NCBI GenBank assembly: GCA_047495785.1
Contig: JBLDXI010000011.1
Location: 1,364,001-1,428,000 of the forward strand
Length of the DNA: 64,000 nucleotides
Source: Lepidodermella squamata
Lineage: Eukaryota; Animalia; Gastrotricha
Direction of reading: 5' to 3'
The position numbers were made by a program, and so were the translations under genes. This document shows positions 40,366-50,526 of this stretch, piece after piece (the stretch's first letter is position 1; the number at the start of each line of letters is the position of its first letter). The notes beneath the pieces were generated by a model. That model ran no database searches, was not told the DNA's origin, and saw only the letters and a list, made by a program, of their open reading frames with translations.

Positions 40366-43300
40366 TTACGCTTTCGATGAGCGGCTGTTACCGCCGGGCG
40401 ACGACGAGCCAGCCGAGCGTGACGCCTTGGCGCCATGCAGGGCTTCGTACATGATGACCTCACGCTGCGCCGCTTCCCATGACAAAACCTCGTCGAGAGA
40501 CGCGTCGATGTACGGAAAATTCCACCGCTCGTGCCAGCCGGGCGGCGAGCCAGACGGCGCCATCAGGGCCGCGTTGTCGTCCCCGCCCGCCAGGTCGTAA
40601 TCAGTGCGGAGTGGGGCGTATGGGAAGATGACAACGCCGCATTTGCGTAGCAGGGGCAGAACGGCGACGGGTAGGAGCGCGAGGGCGATTAGCACCAGGT
40701 CCATCCAGACCATTTGAATAGGGTAGGAGTGCGTGCTCAACAGGTTGTTGTCGATTTTCTCCGCCGCGTTGTAGGCGAAGTATTTAGGCGGCGCCAGCAC
40801 GCGGGCGACTACGCCAGCGCCAAGCACGAAACACGCGAGGCACGGCGACAGGAATCGCCAGAGAATTGACCAGAAGAAACAGGGCGGCTGACCCGTCGCC
40901 CGGGTGGTGGCCTGGCGCACCCTCGGCCACGAGTACACCCAGCCGAAGAGGAAGAGCTGGGCGATGGCGAGCGCCAGGGCGACGAAGGGTAGCACGTAGT
41001 CGTCCAGGCCTTGCAGTAGGTACGATCCGGTTGCGGTTGTGAAGGGGTGAGCGAAAATGAGGCAGAAGAGGGTGAGGCCGGCTGAGGCGAAGGCGGCGTT
41101 GCGAAGGGGTGACGGCAGGCGGGAGTGGCAAAGGACATTCACGGCCGCTGCTAAGTTGAACACGTGGCAACACGCCTAGAGAAAAATCAAAATTTCGAAA
41201 AAATAAAAAAATTTGAAATTTCATCTCAAAAAGGGTGGTAGTTAAAATTTTACAAAATCTGGGGTGACCCAATGGGTTCAAGGGACAGGTCCAAATATTC
41301 GAAAAAACACTCAGTCATCTGATTTAGGAAATTTTATAGCAAAAAATGTGATAAAAAAAGTTGAACAAACATTTTTTTTCGAAAAATCTCATTTTGTCAA
41401 CGAAAATTGATTTTTTAAGGAGGACTTTTTATTTTACCAAAATTAAATTCATGCGATATGTCGACTGATATTGACTAAATGGGTGGCCCGATGAGAATTT
41501 TGACCTCTAAGTTTAACCATCTGCGAATTTGATTTGTGTCTAAGGTATGTATCTCAACCTCTAACCGACGCGACACTACGGGGTGCTAACGCGAAAGCCG
41601 CGCCCTTTCAATCAAACAACACAAGAAGACTGAATCGCCACTTAGCAGTGCGGTCGAAAATTCGATCTCGAATCGATCTGACCCGATAATGCTCAATCAA
41701 GTTATTGCTCAAGCCGCCGCGGCTATTGCTCAATGCGGGTTACCGGCAATGCCGAACGATGCAATCACTCTCCGCAACTATTGCAACACTACAAATATTA
41801 TTATGGCTTTAATTATAGCCAAAAGTGTTGACATTATTGTAAATGTGGCGGCTGATGTTGTTTGTAATGTTAAATTTGATGTACATTTTGAGATTATTGC
41901 CAAGATTACCTTGCGTAAATAAAACATACCTACCTCAATAGACAAAATAAAAAATTCGCAGAAAACAAATGAATTTTTGTATATTTTTAGGACACCTTAA
42001 AATTACAAAAAATGATCTTCATTTTCACGCGATTGCTCATCACTCAACTATGCCAATCTCAGACGGCGGCAACGAGAGCAAAAAATAATGCTCGAAAGTC
42101 AATGATTCGATTCGCCATCTCGCTGATACGAATCAATGCAGCCGTTATCTTCCTTGCCATGCTGACGTTGCTGAAATTTCTAGCACTATTGACTATATCT
42201 CTCCTGCTTCAAGCAGCGTTATTTATCGTTTTAATAATGCTGATTTTTATATAACGAAAATTTTAATAAATCTGACTGATGATGATGATCCATTTTTTGA
42301 ACAAAAAAATATAATAAATTGAATAAAACATCATTTCATATTCGAAAAATGACTTGAAAAATTATGAACAAAAACGAAAAAATAGACGTAATGAGTGGCT
42401 CTTTGAAGAATGGAAATTTCAAGTCATTGAAACTGAGACAAAGACTGTACAGTTAGATTCGAACGGTCTGTGGCGTCAACTAGCATATCTCTGTGTAATT
42501 TAGAATTAATTATTTTCGCTGATTAAGGAGGACATATCTAACCTTCCGAACGGGGACCAAAATCCAGCCCAACCGGTATTTAACCATCTGCGAATTTAAT
42601 TTGTGTCTAAGGTATGTATCATGACCTTACTTCTCGATCGGTCCTCAAGGCGCTAATGCGTAAGCTGCGCCTTTTCATTCGAAAAATAAACATCACTTAA
42701 TCAGTTCACCAAAAATTCAGGGTTCCAGCACTGGATGTCCTCAATATACGAATTTTCGAGTTTCAAGTCTTCATCAGTCATCAGAGTCGAATTCTTAATT
42801 TCATGCTTAATGAGCATTCGGCGCTTATACAAGCCGATTTCGATTATCGATTATCGATTTTAAAAATTAGTGATTTTTCCGATAATAGCAATAAGTATTC
42901 CCTCTTGAGGGTACCAAATAGCTAAAATGAAAAATTCCCTGTTTTTTTACCTGTAATAAAGCTAGACAGATGAGAATAACAGCCGGCGCAATGTGGGTGA
43001 CCCATCGATTCGACGTCCAATTCGAGGTCATACCCAGAATCGCAACAAACGGCAAACTGGGCCCCATTTTCTCAATGAAATCTTCACTGCCACTGCCATC
43101 CGCGAAAGCACCCAGGCCAGTGAAGACAACGAGCAGGCACAGCAGGGACGCGACTAGGTGATGGCAAGTTAGCACGACAGCGTCTTTAGCGAAATGGTTC
43201 CGCAGCCGCAAATGAGCGCCATTCAGCCAAACAAAGCCGGACAGGGCGCCGACTGCGATGAGGCTCTGCGTCGCGGCGTCGAGCCACATTTGCGGCGACA

Positions 43301-46300
43301 CGAGTTTGTAGGCACCGTGCCATTTCAGCAGGCGTTTCATGCCTGAAATGAAAGTTTGAGGCAAGTTTGGCGCGAGAACGGCGCTGGTTATCGCACCGCC
43401 GACTAGGGTTGTGAACAGCAGGACGGCGAATGCGATGGTGAAGCCGTGGATGTGGCGGCGTAGTAGGAGCAGGAAGAAAACTAGGAGCCAGAAAAATATC
43501 ATACCAGCCAACACTTCGCAGACGAAACTGTTCGGAAAATTAAAAAATAAAATTAGTAAGATTAGAAAAAATTCGAATTTTTCAAATTTCAATTGTTATC
43601 TATTATTTTCAAATTTTCGATTTTTGATTTCCCGATTTGATGCATTTTTTCGCCACATTTTCAAGTTTAAATATTCTCGATATTTTAACGATCCTGAGAG
43701 ACGCTTGTTAAATTATTGAAAAGATCTCTTTCAAATTAAAAAATATTTGGACTCAGATTTCACCTTACCACAATCAAAGGCTCGAAATAGAAGCCCTTGC
43801 CAACGCGGGTTATTTTATTTGGCGAAGGACTTCATGATATCAAATCTTATAGCCCTCTGTCTGCTTTCAACAACAAAACAGAAATGAGACATAAATGTAT
43901 CAAAGCTGAGGCAATTAACAAGACTGTAGAAGTCAACAAAATGCATTGCGCATATCGCTGGTCATAAGTCGTTCTCCTCTTAATCTTATTCTGTTATAAA
44001 AATAAAGACACGCGCAAGATTCTGGACAACAATAGCAAGGAGCTGCGTAGCCGAAGCTAGTTAAAAAGTATTTACACTATATTTACACTATACCACCGAG
44101 ATCGAGACGGAATATTTACAAAGATTAAATAAACAACAGATGCTTAAACGCGCCCAAAGGCGTACCAGCCACCGCTTCGCACGATATATCCTTTCGGATA
44201 ACATCAGCGACAGGTCGGACATGTATTAGCGCACGGTTGCCGAAGTTACCAGCGAGTTGGACCATCCGGTCACGGAGCAGCGGTAAACCAGCACGGCGAC
44301 AGAGCTCAGCACCATTCAGGTGTTCACGCGGGTCGATTCCGAGAATGAGGCGTAGTGCCCAGTTCTGAAGAACCTCAAGCCGACGAAACTGCTTGGCCGA
44401 GACGTGCAGAAAAGTCGCACAGGCGTACTCAAGGATCGGTCTGACCGTCGTTACGTAAACCAACTTCCGCGTCTCGAAGGACACGGGCGATCCCGGATAA
44501 CAGATCGAGGCCAATCCAGCAATTCGAGACCGAGCGTCTTTGACGATTTTGTCGAAATGCAGTTTGAAGGTCTGATTACTGTCGAATAAGATGCCGAGGT
44601 ACGTAGCTGATTTCACAACAGGCAACTGTTGACCGCCAATACGGAGATCAGGGACTTCATTCGTGTTGAACGCCATCACCTGACATTTCAACGGGTTGAG
44701 AGGAAGACGCCACAGCCGACTCCAGCGCTCGATCTGCCGTAGTGCAGCTTGCACTCTCGCCGTCGCCAGACCAGCCCAACACGCCGCTTCGCAGACCAAA
44801 ACGTCGTCAGCGTAAGTAGCAGCAGAGGCGGTACCAAGGCCAGCGTCATCCGGATACAGATCTGCTGTGAAGAAAGCAAAGAGTATTGGACTCAGGGCAG
44901 AGCCTTGCGGCACGCCCGAGCCGATGCTGAACTTTGTAGGACTGAAAGAGTCACCCACCCGGACGACAAAGGATCGCCCTTCGAGGTAATAGAAGCCCTT
45001 TCGCTTAGACCTAAACACGAAATTTGAAAATTGGGAAGGATAATATAGGTTTGTTGGAGGGGCTTCAAACTTCGTTGGAAAGTGAAATTAACCATCTGCG
45101 AATTAAATTTGTGTCTAAGGTATGTATCCGATCCTCCAGTAGTGTGAGACCTAGGGGCGCTGAAGCGTAAGCTATGCCCCTTTCAAAGAAAATACAAATA
45201 CGTCGAAACTAAGGTGCTAAAGCAAGGTGCTTCAATACTTTGAATTTCACTTTCTCATGATTCCTGCCAACATAGGCCAGTAATTTAGTAATTTTAATGA
45301 AAGAGAGGCACTTCGAGATCCGATACCCAAATGAAAACGTCATATTGATAAATTGGAAGTTTTATCTATTAATCCAATTAAATGAAAAAAACCAGCTAGT
45401 TTTACGGCTATCATAGCAAAACTACTAAATTGGGACTGCAGAACATCGCCAGTTATTTTTTCCATCAATTTTCGATTTTCTGATTGAAAAAAATATCGGA
45501 ATATTTCTGATATTATAACGATCTTGACCAAGCGCTAAACTCGATTAAGATAGAAACTTATTAAATCAATGAAAAAGAATATCTTATAAATTAAAAAAGC
45601 TAGAACTCAGTTTGCACCTTGCTACGATTCAAATCTGAGCAACAAGCCCTTTCGTTATAATTCCAATCCGAAATTAGGAAATTGGAGATAATATTTCAGG
45701 TCTGTTAAAGGGCCCTAAAAATCGGTAGCGAAGTGTAATTAACCATCTGCGAATTTAATTTGTGTCTAAGAGGGTTGTGATCGAAACGAGCAAACATTTA
45801 ATCCACCTTATTCCACGCTATTCCACGCTTTATCCCACGCTATTCCTTGATTAACTTGGCGAAACCTTCTCAATTAGAGAAATTTTGCTTCAAAAGAGGT
45901 GATCGAAAGAAGCAAACACGCCAAAACGCACTCTATTTCAGAGTAAATTCAAAGTAATCGCGAATTTGTGCGAAAATAGCTGTAATTTATTTATTTTCGT
46001 CAATTTTTGAGGGATAAAACGAGAATTTTGGGGTCAAATCTGCACCCCAGTCCGGACTGTGTCATAAATTTGCTTTAAAATGAGCAAATTTAGTGAAAAT
46101 TTCAGAAAAAGCTGCGATGATTCACCGATGATTCGCCGTAAAAATTGCGCAACAGTTGACGTCAATATTGCGTTTAGATATTACCCTCGCCTCCAAACCT
46201 TTGCCGCCCGGCCTATTGGCCCAGCAAGATTAGCGCGATCTCTTTATACGGTTCAGAGCTCAACAAAGCACACCTTTAATAATCGAATTTCTGGCCGTTT

Positions 46301-48098
46301 TAGTAATAACGTGAAATCATGGATAGGTAGATTTGTGAACTAATGAATAAGCATTGATCGTTTATTAGGCTAACATCTTCACAAGTTGGAGGCGTATAGC
46401 TACCGGCAGTCGGATTTTCAATAGCGGGGAAGTTGAGATTAACCAAGTTTTTGGGGGTCATCCGACCTGAATTCGGGTCATTCACAACATCCGAAAAACG
46501 TGTTAGCGGCATTGAATAATATCAACCTAGGTAACTTCGTTGTCTTCGTCACTAATGACACCAAACATACCTTGCAAGATTTCAACACTTATTTCTATTT
46601 CTATTAGATATGATTCGCAAGGAGAAGAACACCCGCTGAAATGCGTCTTGTGTCTCGTGACATTGAAAAAATGTGCGAAAAATGCGTGAAAAATTGTTCA
46701 AATGTTACAAAATGGCACTGAATTTGCAAAATCAATCCGAATGCAGGCTTGCATTGTTACATCATAATCGCGAATATTGCGCGTCATTGGGACCATTGTT
46801 ACTGTCAACACATGAAAACTTGTACATTTCAATTTGCTATCGAATTTGTTCCGAGAATAGCGCAAACCTAATGACGGGACAAATTTACTGAGAGAAATAA
46901 CAAATAATTCTCGAAAGCTAAAATGACACAAATTATTTGCTTCTTTCGATCACAACCCTCTAAGGTATGTATCCTCTCTTCAAGTAGAGTGAAACCTAGG
47001 GGCGCTAAAGCGAAAGCTGTGCCTCTTTCTAACCAAAAACAAACATAAAAATAGCTTATCAAGGTATTTGAGTTTTTTCAAATTTACGTTCTCGCCTATT
47101 TCTGCCAACTTGAGTCAAATATCTTTCAGGAAGTTATTTTCTTTCTTTTCCCATCCAATTCGCTTGAAGAAACAATGAGAGGCAGTTCGAGAACCGAGAT
47201 CCAAATTTTGAAATGTCTCACGAATTTTGGAAATTTTGTATCAATTTTAATCCAACTTAATTTTAAAAAAATCAGCAAATTTTACGGCCTTCATAGAAAA
47301 TTTGCTAAATTTGGTCATTTTCACCTATCGGAACACCACTAAATCAAGTTTCAAAAACTTGGAATCTGTAATTTTTAAGAATTTCTTTCCAATTTTTCTG
47401 ACATCTTTTCGGACCAATATTGAATAAAAAACTTACTAGTGGCGAATGTGGGTCATTGTTTCAATGCTGGGCACGTTCCCAAACACATCGCCATGCAAAA
47501 AATCGACAGCAGCACCAGGCCGGAGGTTTTCACCGGCCTGATCGCGCCTGACCCACAGCGGCTCCTCGCTCGTAATAATCGACTCATTGCCACCAGTCGA
47601 CTTCCAGGTCGGATAGGCGAGTAGGAAAGGCGCGTCAAACAAGTGAACGAGCGAGTGCCACGAGATGGCGAACGACCACGCGGCTGGCGTTGATGCGTAG
47701 ATGACAACATATAGCATGTAGATGAAAGCTGACAGGCCGAGTCCGCACAACGCCGGGTGCAATTTCGGCCACGCCAGGTAAGACTGTGACCAAACGAGTT
47801 GGCCGACGAACAGTTCGCAGCACAGTATCGGCAGGGTGATTAGAAAGGCGCACGTGACTAGGGGCACCAGAAACGCGGCGCCGTGCCTTGCGTAGATGTA
47901 GGGCAGGCGCCATGATGACGCCGCGCTTAGGGAGTAACCGACAACTGCGAGGAGGAAATGCGGTTTGCCGAGAGCGGCGACCCGCCGGTGGGCCCTCAGG
48001 GGTGATATGGGTGCTGAAGGGGGCGGTGGGACAGGTTCACTTGGCAGTAACGGCTCGCCGGCTGAGGCCGAAGTTGTGTCCTTGATATCAGCGGTCAT
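40366..48098 (-). CDS. Divergent SLC6 (neurotransmitter:sodium symporter family) transporter, 3 exons
   Basis: Exons 48098-47437, 43527-42951, 41175-40366. Motifs WRLPY, AFLVP, ELFVGQ, WLDAATQ, FAKDA, GPSLPF, TGSYLL, FGWVY, WRFLSP. Confidence 0.88.
41513..41608 (+). ncRNA. Candidate spliced-leader/snRNA-like gene, copy A
   Basis: TTAACCATCTGCGAATTTGATTTGTGTCTAAG|GTATGTATC, then 29 nt, then GTGC-TAAC-GC-GAAA-GC-C-GCGC hairpin, then CCTTT. Confidence 0.55.
42580..42675 (+). ncRNA. Candidate spliced-leader/snRNA-like gene, copy B
   Basis: Same 41-nt head, 29-nt spacer, hairpin AAGGCGC-TAAT-GC-GTAA-GC-T-GCGCCTT. Confidence 0.55.
43799..44987 (-). mobile_element. 5'-truncated non-LTR retrotransposon (I/Jockey/CR1-like RT), recent insertion
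   Basis: Intact RT C-terminal ORF (GVPQGSALSPILF, YADD, LNPLKC, YLGI, RPILEY) ending at 44125. Flanked by a perfect 13-bp TSD AATAGAAGCCCTT at 43786-43798 and 44988-45000. Confidence 0.92.
45088..45183 (+). ncRNA. Candidate spliced-leader/snRNA-like gene, copy C
   Basis: Same head, 28-nt spacer, hairpin AGGGGCGC-TGAA-GC-GTAA-GC-T-ATGCCCCT. Confidence 0.55.
45739..47028 (+). pseudogene. Candidate spliced-leader-like gene, copy D, split by a DNA transposon
   Basis: Head at 45739-45769 and remainder at 46964-47028 rejoin into an intact unit when 45770-46960 and one TAA are removed. Confidence 0.7.
45770..46960. mobile_element. Non-autonomous PIF/Harbinger-type DNA transposon (1191 bp)
   Basis: 25-bp TIRs gagggttgtgatcgaaa(cg/ga)agcaaa, 3-bp TAA TSD (45767-45769 and 46961-46963), no transposase ORF. 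Confidence 0.9.
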
Positions 48099-48405
48099 TT
48101 TTCAGGGTAAATGAGGTCTCAAATCGCCATGGTTAATCAGCAGTTAAAAAAATCACACAAAATTAAAGCTCTAAAAAAAATGAAGAAATTCTCCTTAAAA
48201 CTGTGAAAAATGAAAAAACGGTAAATCAGCGCAATTCGAACGCAATAATTAAAGCACTTTAAAAATACTAACGTAATTCAAGATTTTATTGCACACTTTT
48301 TTTAAGCAGGTTGGCACCTCGTAGGAATAATTAAATGAATCCAGGTATTGAAATTCGACGTTGATAACATCAAAAATGCGCCTCAAAATCAGGTGGATCA
48401 GGGAT

Positions 48406-48499
48406 TTAACCATCTGCGAATTATATTTGTGTCTAAGGTATGTATCTTCGCCTCACCGTCTCGAACCCTCAGAGCGCTTACGCGAAAGCTGTGCTCTTT
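48406..48499 (+). ncRNA. Candidate spliced-leader/snRNA-like gene, copy E
   Basis: Same head, 27-nt spacer, compensated hairpin AGAGCGC-TTAC-GC-GAAA-GC-T-GTGCTCT. Confidence 0.55.
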
Positions 48500-49597
48500 A
48501 AAAACAACACAACAAATCCAGAAATTTTTTTTATGACAAACTCTGCGGAAAGTTTTCTAAAAAATGACGCTAATGCTATATTTCCTCTACAGAAAAAAAT
48601 AAAATAAATCGCATTGAGTTAAATCGGGATATAGCGCTCAGTATATCGGTGTCACGTAAAAAACTACTCAGTAGATGCGCGCATTATGCCACGCAAAAAA
48701 TCTGATGAGATTCAATAAAAAGGCGAGACATGAGAAAATATGTATCCACTTTAAAATTGGTTGTATAAACGAATCAATCACCCAGCGATAGCTGAGCAGC
48801 ATTAAAACCACTAGATAAAAAATGACAAATTTTAATATAAAAATTCCGCCTTAATAATTTGCACCAATAATAATCGAATTGGCCAGAATATAAAAAAATC
48901 TGCGTTATATTATATTGCTTGATTGAGTGTATAGTGATCAGAATAATAATAATAACAATAATACCTAATAATTACATGGACTTGGAAAAGTCGTGCGTTG
49001 TCACGGTTGTGTGAGCACGCAAAAAACCAGCACTACTGCATATGTCATGTTAATTAGTTAATTATTCATGAGAGAGCAGAGGACACGCGCCGGCCGGCCG
49101 CCTGACGCGATGTGAAAAAAACCCACTACGACGACAGCGAACCGGTCAGTTGATTTCAATACACATACCTATACTAGAAAACAGCTGTTCAAGCAACGCG
49201 CGACTCATCAAGTGTAAAAATAAATAAATAAATTCAGGTAGATTATCAAACTAATCCCGCGCACTGAGCGACAAATTTTAGGGACAATATAACAATATAA
49301 CTCGAGGGTAATAGCAAAACAAATAAAGGCGTTGTTTTCTTTCGTTGTTTTTGTTATTTCGAGGTCGCAAATGATGCGGCTCAATTTCGCGAAAAGCTTA
49401 TACCAATGCTGCGGGAAATTTCAATCATTAGATTAGAATAGATGTCGCCACCGCCGAGGGTGGCCAATACACGACTAAAAACAGCGCAAAATTAGAATAT
49501 TCAGAACGAAAAGATGAGGAATTATTTTTGCTGAACAAAAGAGCGTCAAAAACCAGAATTCACGGGAAAATTCAAGAGCGTAGAGATCCAAGAAATT

Positions 49598-49678
49598 TTA
49601 ACCATCTGCGAAATAATTTTGTGCCTATAAGGTATGTATTCCACCTCCCAATCGCGTTACGCGAAAGCTGCGCTCTTT
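49598..49678 (+). pseudogene. Degenerate copy F of the spliced-leader-like unit
   Basis: TTAACCATCTGCGAAATAATTTTGTGCCTATAAGGTATGTATT with a shortened spacer and a partial hairpin. Confidence 0.5.
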
Positions 49679-50526
49679 ACGATTGCGCTCACTCGAATTA
49701 TTAAGGCGGATTTTTTTAATTAAATTCCTTCACTATCAGAAATGCAAAAATAATGGAAAATAATGTCAAAAGATATGAAATTCTCGGTAAAATCGGACGA
49801 CCATCAATAACAATAAACAGAATAAAAAATCGGGTGCGCCATGTTGCGTCGAAGAAAACAAAAAAGCGCGCACAGGTAAAACAGAAATTCACCAGACGAA
49901 ATAATACCTTATTCATAATATTATATACATTATAGGAATTAAATAATGATAGTTTTACTAATCATAGGTAATAATAATGTTATCACAAGCGTGAGCGAAA
50001 ATTATTCCAGGCCGCATCAGCAGCCGCCGCCGCATCATCTGTTGATTATGACGGCGGTATAATGATAATAGTATAAAATGAAAGCAACAGAATTATCATT
50101 CGGATACGTGTGCCTGCCTATATATCGCAACAGCATCAACAACAAGACGGCGGTCTGTGTTTTATTTACCAATAAATACCGACCGACCTGGCACCGTCGA
50201 TAATTATTCTTTTGCCGACGCGGGCGAATCAAGGGCGTTAAACAAATCGCGATCGGGCGCACGCGGCCAGGCGTGCACAGGCTTTTATATAACAACAACA
50301 ATAATAATAACAACAGTGGCAACGATGAAATAATAATTGAAATCGTGAGGAAATTATTCGCAATTTTCGAATAAATAGTAGGTTATATTGACTAAATAGC
50401 GGCCTAATTACTACCGCGAAGTAGCCAATTTCCGCAGATTGTTTTTCGATAAAAGTAGTAAATAATAAGGTTCTATATTAAGGTGGAATAACAAAATATT
50501 ATTCCTCTCCAAAATGTATTTATTTA

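Follow-up and report, generated by a model that had tools for sequence, protein, structure and literature searches.

The window analysed here is a 64,000-nucleotide (nt) stretch of the genome of the gastrotrich Lepidodermella squamata (GenBank assembly GCA_047495785.1, contig JBLDXI010000011.1, positions 1,364,001 to 1,428,000, forward strand). Its gene content is metazoan and includes type IV collagen, class C G protein-coupled receptors, a DHHC enzyme and a sodium:neurotransmitter symporter (SNF transporter). The sequence GTATGTATC occurs five times in the window, always on the + strand, compared with 0.16 occurrences expected. In a repeat search, every occurrence fell within a unit that measures about 95 nt and contains two constant modules. 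The segment between GTATGTATC and the hairpin core is here called the linker. Judged by their anatomy, the units are spliced-leader (SL) RNA genes, and trans-splicing is the function that we would assign to them. The original prediction, made from the letters of the window, had described copies A to E and proposed two roles for the linker, a length-constrained spacer or a programmable specificity segment.

Copies A to D lie within introns of the SNF transporter gene (40366..48098), on the opposite strand (Table 1). Two features had been overlooked at first. Copy D is a split gene, with a 1,194-bp transposon between its leader exon and its donor, and a sixth unit, copy F, is present; copy F is probably a pseudogene. 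The arms of the transposon in copy D measure about 29-34 nt (34-nt arms, 85% complementary), and CTAAG is repeated on both sides of the element. It belongs to a dispersed repeat family, of which an 87% identical full-length copy is found at C16:503260-504508 and fragments elsewhere (sites outside the window are written with a C number). The C16 copy lies outside all SL genes found.

Anatomy of the units and their genomic family

Each unit starts at its 5' end with an invariant stretch that begins (UU)AACCAUCUGCGAA, followed by an AU-rich variable patch of 5-6 nt. After this patch comes AUUUGUGUCUAAG, then directly the donor GUAUGUAUC, and then the linker. Downstream of the linker are a hairpin of 7 bp, whose internal loop is of the GNRA type, a tail reading CUUUA, and A-rich DNA. 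The leader is 30-32 nt long and invariant except for its AU-rich loop; in 41 copies it ends in CUAAG and is followed by GUAUGUAUC. The variable patch reads TTTGA in 20 genes, TTATA in 6 and TTTAA in 3, with other variants rarer, and corresponds to UUUAA in copy B, UUAAA in copy C and UUAUA in copy E. A 6-bp hairpin is predicted within the leader, and the patch is its loop.

We searched the genome for the junction motif with up to one mismatch and obtained 62 sites, compared with 0 for the reversed control. At least 41 intact genes, comprising leader, donor and hairpin, are present genome-wide. C17 carries tandem arrays whose period is about 680 bp, and smaller clusters lie on C54, C19, C11, C9, C16 and C3. 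One of the C17 arrays (C17:1741500-1750400, L040) includes a U1 small nuclear RNA (snRNA) gene with the 5' end AAACUUACCUG and a transfer RNA (tRNA) gene, at L040 3558-3717 and 3836-3907. Another array position, C17:1138526-1138700, holds what appears to be a further interrupted SL RNA gene, in which GTTTATTGTCGG... follows the leader in place of the donor, with a linker and hairpin about 100-150 bp downstream.

The 3' hairpin is real. Four of its seven pairs show compensatory alternation between G-C, G-U and A-U, and at one position the counts are G-C 14, G-U 16 and A-U 7. RNAalifold, applied to 37 sequences, returned this hairpin together with the leader-internal hairpin and three pairs between the leader ACC and the junction G|GU. 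The predicted leader pairs are neither supported nor refuted by the alignment because those positions never vary. Searches against Rfam found nothing above the gathering score, in either the window or the arrays; at E values up to 10, the matches were at chance level and to unrelated families.

The absence of a canonical AU4-6G Sm site, noted at first for the window copies, extends to the introns of all 37 distinct genomic copies, and RAU3-6GR is likewise absent from all 37. Sm-like matches are found only in the leader exon, at -19/-20, as AAUUUGA in 20 of the 37 copies and AUUUGUG in 35. We take this leader motif to resemble the Sm sites of the U1 and U7 snRNAs. The Sm site of SL RNAs is normally intronic, and exonic in dinoflagellates and a few other sequences (PMC3795323). 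An intron free of Sm sites combined with Sm-like motifs in the leader bears on particle assembly, and also affects pipelines that demand an intronic Sm motif before an SL RNA gene is called.

About 32 to 18 nt upstream of most copies, a G-rich box followed by an AAAAT box is visible by eye; across 22 lineages of genes (defined below) it holds just 0.4-0.8 bit per position, a weak signal. The corresponding candidate promoter box of copy A is listed in Table 1. The TTAAGGAGGAC box found upstream of copies A and B was rejected as a promoter element: its distances differ (about -98 and about -57), and it is absent from the other copies.

Table 1. Features of the window (positions in the window) and leader fusions elsewhere in the genome.
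Feature	Position	Strand	Details
SL RNA gene copy A	41513..41609	+	exon 41513-41544, donor 41545-41553, linker 41554-41582, 3' hairpin 41580-41606 (folded)
Linker A, 29 nt	41554..41582	+	single match in genome at <=3 mismatches
Candidate promoter box of copy A	41481..41501	+	G-rich element followed by an A/T element, from about 32 to 18 nt before AACC
SL RNA gene copy B	42580..42676	+	exon 42580-42611, donor 42612-42620, linker 42621-42649, hairpin 42647-42673
Linker B, 29 nt	42621..42649	+	single match in genome
SL RNA gene copy C	45088..45183	+	exon 45088-45119, donor 45120-45128, linker 45129-45156, hairpin 45154-45180
Linker C, 28 nt	45129..45156	+	single match in genome
Copy D leader exon	45739..45770	+	separated from its own intron by the insertion
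Transposon with terminal inverted repeats, 1,194 bp, non-autonomous	45771..46964	.	exactly at the exon/donor boundary of copy D
Copy D remainder	46965..47028	+	donor 46965-46973, linker 46974-47001 (28 nt), hairpin 46999-47025
SL RNA gene copy E	48406..48500	+	exon 48406-48437, donor 48438-48446, linker 48447-48473 (27 nt; single match in genome), hairpin 48471-48497
Copy F, degenerate	49598..49679	+	leader altered (ends in GTGCCTATAAG); linker about 13 nt; hairpin without its 5' arm
SNF transporter, three exons	40366-41163, 42867-43592, 47436-48098	-	PF00209 profile positions 390-518, 182-335, 6-114
Leader fusion L064	C4:652784		
Leader fusion L065	C7:4113099		
Leader fusion L066	C25:90099		
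Leader fusion L067	C25:101046		
Leader fusion L068	C46:1679951		

Length, composition and conservation of the linker

The linker lengths first reported for copies A-E (29, 29, 28, 28 and 27 nt) were reproduced by a script that locates the hairpin core G[CT]GC and gave exactly the same end points. The five sequences are also largely unrelated, as had been described, with only C and D alike (84% over 85 nt in the repeat search). Across the 41 genes, the linker measures 26-31 nt with a mode of 28. These genes carry 34 distinct linker strings belonging to about 22 lineages, which were taken as independent for the length statistics. Three lineages (C17, C54/C11 and C19) make up 24 of the 41 genes. 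Over the 22 lineages the mean length is 28.0 nt with a standard deviation of 1.38. The proposal of a length-constrained linker fits these figures, with a length of 28 +/- 1.4 nt maintained across about 22 lineages whose sequences are saturated.

Composition is constrained as well. The 5' half of the linker contains 38% C and 9% G, compared with 18% C and 18.5% G in the flanks. Each of 16-18 central positions carries almost no information; the values rise to as much as 1.4 bits for A-C-C at +13 to +15 and to 0.6-1.6 bits for the CUCAG that precedes the hairpin.

Averaged over all 820 gene pairs, identity reaches 0.98 in the donor and 0.95 in the leader; the hairpin scores 0.86, the linker 0.58 and the flanks 0.52-0.53, against a random baseline of 0.48-0.50. 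The linkers of the two C17 arrays, located 600 kb apart, are 92-100% identical, and those of C11:1325064 and the C54 genes are 85-92% identical. In 44 gene pairs, both flanks fall below 0.60 and the linkers are at least 90% identical. Because these 44 pairs keep their linkers while the flanks have diverged, the linker evolves more slowly than neutral DNA, and it looks unrelated only between old paralogues. Being kept between copies whose flanks have reached the random baseline, the linker is therefore conserved and not diversified. The term hypervariable, used in the original prediction, does not survive comparison of all genomic copies, in which many genes share a linker lineage and linkers are conserved relative to the flanks. 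That prediction had named divergence at the neutral rate as an outcome that speaks against a guide function; the divergence found is even slower than neutral.

These comparisons also bear on whether the window copies are decaying pseudogenes, with linkers that drift neutrally and lengths that are similar through recent ancestry. In favour of decay, copy F is clearly degenerate and a transposon interrupts copy D. The CC...GG hairpin of the major families is missing from copies A, C and E, and copies A-D sit within the introns of another gene. However, the leaders of copies A-E are intact and differ only in the AU-rich loop, which is variable among array genes too. Their donors are identical, and their hairpins stay paired through compensatory changes. 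The flanks are saturated, and neutral copies would have saturated leaders too. Linker length, in turn, has been lost in copy F, the one copy with a decayed leader. General decay of the window copies is thus quite improbable.

We consider it likely that the segment is a length- and composition-constrained, sequence-tolerant linker in the SL RNA intron, extending from the donor to the 3' hairpin. The leader, donor and hairpin are under strong selection in every copy. The constraint on the linker comprises a length of about 28 nt, a C/U-rich composition with a G-poor 5' half and a few positions at its ends, leaving the 16-18 nt in between free. Linkers of old paralogues have become unrelated, and those of young copies and large arrays are still held in common. 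The linker might act as a spacer, or ruler, that sets the distance from the donor to the particle core bound at the hairpin. With so little G in its 5' half, it would not tie up the donor or the leader by pairing, and it would be discarded with the branched intron after trans-splicing. SL introns are reported to be far less conserved than leaders (PMC3795323).

Several points weigh against this reading. The intron is devoid of the canonical Sm site, a textbook feature of SL RNAs. Expression and trans-splicing of the copies are deduced from sequence, and the ruler role from the conservation of length. The identity of linkers between copies with diverged flanks could also stem from gene conversion or RNA-mediated copying confined to the transcribed part, in place of selection on the linker. 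Finally, 9 of the 22 lineages, including the three multi-copy families, form a local hairpin in the linker, and structure may thus matter in the main genes.

Folding and target searches

The folding of the linker was compared with that of 500 dinucleotide shuffles. The mean minimum free energy (MFE) z-score is -0.40 (t = -1.7, 22 lineages), and six lineages, including copies A and E, have a folding energy of zero. When only the linker was shuffled inside the full RNA, z was -0.13 for ensemble energy, +0.57 (t = 1.7) for linker-internal pairing and -0.06 for pairing between the linker and the constant parts. Duplexes between the linker and the 5' part of the leader showed no excess pairing (mean z = 0.01), with the exception of the lineage C19:1472991/1474469, whose linker has a 12-bp match to the leader. 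The RNAalifold consensus contains no pair within the linker. A hairpin general to all linkers was rejected, given the marginal trend relative to shuffles and the lack of a consensus pair in the alignment.

A different form of structural constraint was considered, in which the segment would be a true stem-loop II. Its sequence could then vary, and its fixed length would reflect a conserved hairpin maintained by compensatory substitutions. The three multi-copy families, along with six single lineages, form a local hairpin with more internal pairing than shuffles (z = 1.1 to 3.7), in line with the weak overall trends in MFE and internal pairing. The C33 copy and its metagenome relative, described below, keep a 4-bp stem as the loop changes. 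Against this, 13 of the 22 lineages have no hairpin beyond shuffles, and the folding energy of six lineages is zero. The hairpins also lie at differing places in the segment, and the substitutions within the C17 family, read by eye, are not compensatory in any single register. A true stem-loop II is thus an unlikely account of the segment as a whole. A weak stem-loop II is possible in the main genes because nine lineages, including the three large families, have a local hairpin.

The donor and linker were further examined as a complete mini-intron, with a pyrimidine-rich body and a YAG before the hairpin. This candidate was rejected because the introns of the collagen IV gene in the window are 52-58 nt long and AT-rich, and because the AG belongs to the covarying base of the 3' hairpin.

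The remaining proposal is that of a programmable guide, in which each gene encodes a distinct small or guide RNA, or in which base pairing addresses the leader to a subset of targets. The constant-variable-constant architecture is suggestive, with a fixed length in the size range of PIWI-interacting RNAs (piRNAs) or CRISPR RNAs. In addition, every copy retains an intact leader and hairpin, an indication that the divergent copies are kept by selection. However, instead of a large repertoire of specificity segments, the genome holds 34 strings in the roughly 22 lineages, dominated by the three large ones, and the linker is conserved between copies with random flanks. We searched the 121-Mb genome on both strands with linkers A, B, C and E and the two commonest linkers. 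At up to three mismatches, all matches fell in SL RNA genes, and the reversed patterns of the six linkers gave 0 matches; these target scans are blind to seed-only pairing and to foreign targets. Short exact matches of the 22 linkers in 137 kb of sequence were not in excess over shuffles (mean z = 0.10), and the two longest, of 14 and 13 nt, occurred at chance frequency. The complementarity to targets that the original prediction had suggested looking for was not in excess over the reversed controls in the genome, nor over shuffles in the 137 kb. The linker begins with C in 11 lineages, with U or A in 5 each and with G in 1, and has no bias for a 5' U. The published piRNAs of L. squamata are conventional, 30-32 nt long, derived from clusters, with ping-pong, and not of the 21U type (PMC6468455). 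Furthermore, the unit is fully accounted for as an SL RNA gene. The proposal of a mini-gene with a programmable segment thus finds no footing in these data, and we hold a guide function to be very improbable.

A narrower variant would make the linkers paralogue-specific addresses, with seed-like pairing, too short to register in these scans, drawing each SL RNA variant to a subset of outrons or intercistronic regions. The chance that it is correct appears very small. If true, it would provide a sequence-programmed counterpart to the division of labour between nematode SL1 and SL2, in which the fixed length sets where the seed lies with respect to the donor. Variable introns of this kind are commonplace among SL RNA genes, and the linker shows no sign of being a guide sequence.

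Leader fusions, known systems and related sites

The literature that we searched contained no report of SL trans-splicing in Gastrotricha, and the present result is a well-resolved SL RNA gene family in this phylum. Four look-ups of exact proteins from window genes matched no transcript contigs. Because the AU-rich loop of 5-6 nt is the only variable part of the leader, it constitutes a natural barcode of the donor gene, which together with RNA-seq would show which copies donate leaders.

At six sites in the genome, the leader continues from CUAAG into a sequence that does not start with GU. One is the exon of copy D, and five are fusions to other sequence (L064-L068, Table 1). In four of the five (L064-L067), a retroelement-like open reading frame (ORF) starts a few nt downstream; the junction positions differ, and one is not after AG. 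The leader is truncated at its 5' end in three (L065-L067), and two of these, L066 and L067, adjoin the 3' end of a tRNA. Such fusions are compatible with an insertion at the donor and subsequent co-transcription, and were rejected as proof of trans-splicing. A reverse-transcriptase ORF fragment (PF00078) is also present in the window, at 44125-45018 on the - strand in an intron of the SNF transporter gene, and ends about 70 nt upstream of copy C.

Platyhelminthes are the proposed sister group of gastrotrichs, and flatworm leaders end in AUG. The leader described here ends in UCUAAG, and no sequence similarity to the flatworm SL RNAs was seen. The two systems are alike in leader size (30-odd nt) and in the length of the RNA (about 90-100 nt; see also PMC3795323). 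Flatworm leaders are 36-37 nt long and T-rich (PMC3795323).

The units are reminiscent of the nematode SL1 and SL2 RNA genes (sls-1 and sls-2 in Caenorhabditis elegans; see also PMC3795323). In both cases the genes are small, multi-copy and partly tandem, with an invariant short leader ending in AG, a GU donor, a 3' stem-loop and linkage to other small-RNA genes, and the introns of paralogues differ as the leader is kept. The two sets of genes have no sequence or Rfam similarity, however, and the leader is 30-32 nt here and 22 nt in nematodes. The gastrotrich intron also has no AU4-6G Sm site between stem-loops, and one well-supported hairpin only. Dinoflagellate SL RNAs similarly lack a canonical Sm-type motif in the intron. 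Their Sm site is exonic (PMC3795323), which recalls the Sm-like U-rich motif of the leader here; the organisms and leaders are unrelated, and the candidate exon motif of the gastrotrich lies within a predicted small exon hairpin. With the 21U-RNA (type I piRNA) mini-genes of C. elegans, the units share a short constant motif beside a variable stretch of fixed size. The 21U loci, however, number in the thousands, each unique, with a 5' U and transcription driven by an upstream motif, whereas the units here have about 22 linker types without such a bias, and what stays constant in them is the leader exon, the donor and the hairpin.

A search of the genome contig collection with two patterns revealed no further relatives, and the sole relative is one metagenome contig, JACCDR010895355.1. 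This contig groups an SL RNA gene with the 3' end of a large subunit (LSU) ribosomal RNA (rRNA) and a 5S rRNA gene, all within 800 bp. The leader and hairpin of this SL RNA gene are identical to those of L. squamata, and its linker matches that of the C33 copy at 23 of 28 bases. Nothing is alignable between the two genes outside the transcribed region. Its source is either a close relative or a different strain, and its SL gene is located in the spacer of the ribosomal DNA.

The junction core TKTGTCYAAG|GTATG is found at 96 genomic sites, compared with 0 for the reversed control. About 50 of these are not SL RNA genes and have neither the leader head nor the hairpin. Such sites may be mimics of the donor within outrons, decayed fragments of genes, or footprints left by elements that target the donor. 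Some junction-core sites occur as tandem sets 50-80 nt apart, or as inverted sets in short gaps between coding stretches. Examples of the sites outside SL genes are C42:4942023/4942087, C16:39425/39494/39544, C42:1199966/1200029, C9:4576029/4576111, C42:2152245-2152372 and C1:1623-12509, and one such site is located 32 nt upstream of cag|ATG.

A second repeated unit has only AATTTGTGTCTAAG|GTATGT in common with the SL genes. Its upstream part ends in ...GCTCCGCTCTC and its downstream part reads CCCAGCTTACGC..., both unlike SL genes. At least seven near-identical copies were seen, several of them on small contigs (C44, C58, C93, C110, C2:2904596 and C17:3876484). Finally, at about position 435 of C116:25100-26000, on the - strand, an SL junction and GTATGT are followed by a U2 snRNA-like 5' end (ATCGCTTCTCGGCC...). 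This locus adjoins an LSU rRNA segment (Rfam positions 672-1101) and is either a chimeric locus or an assembly artefact.

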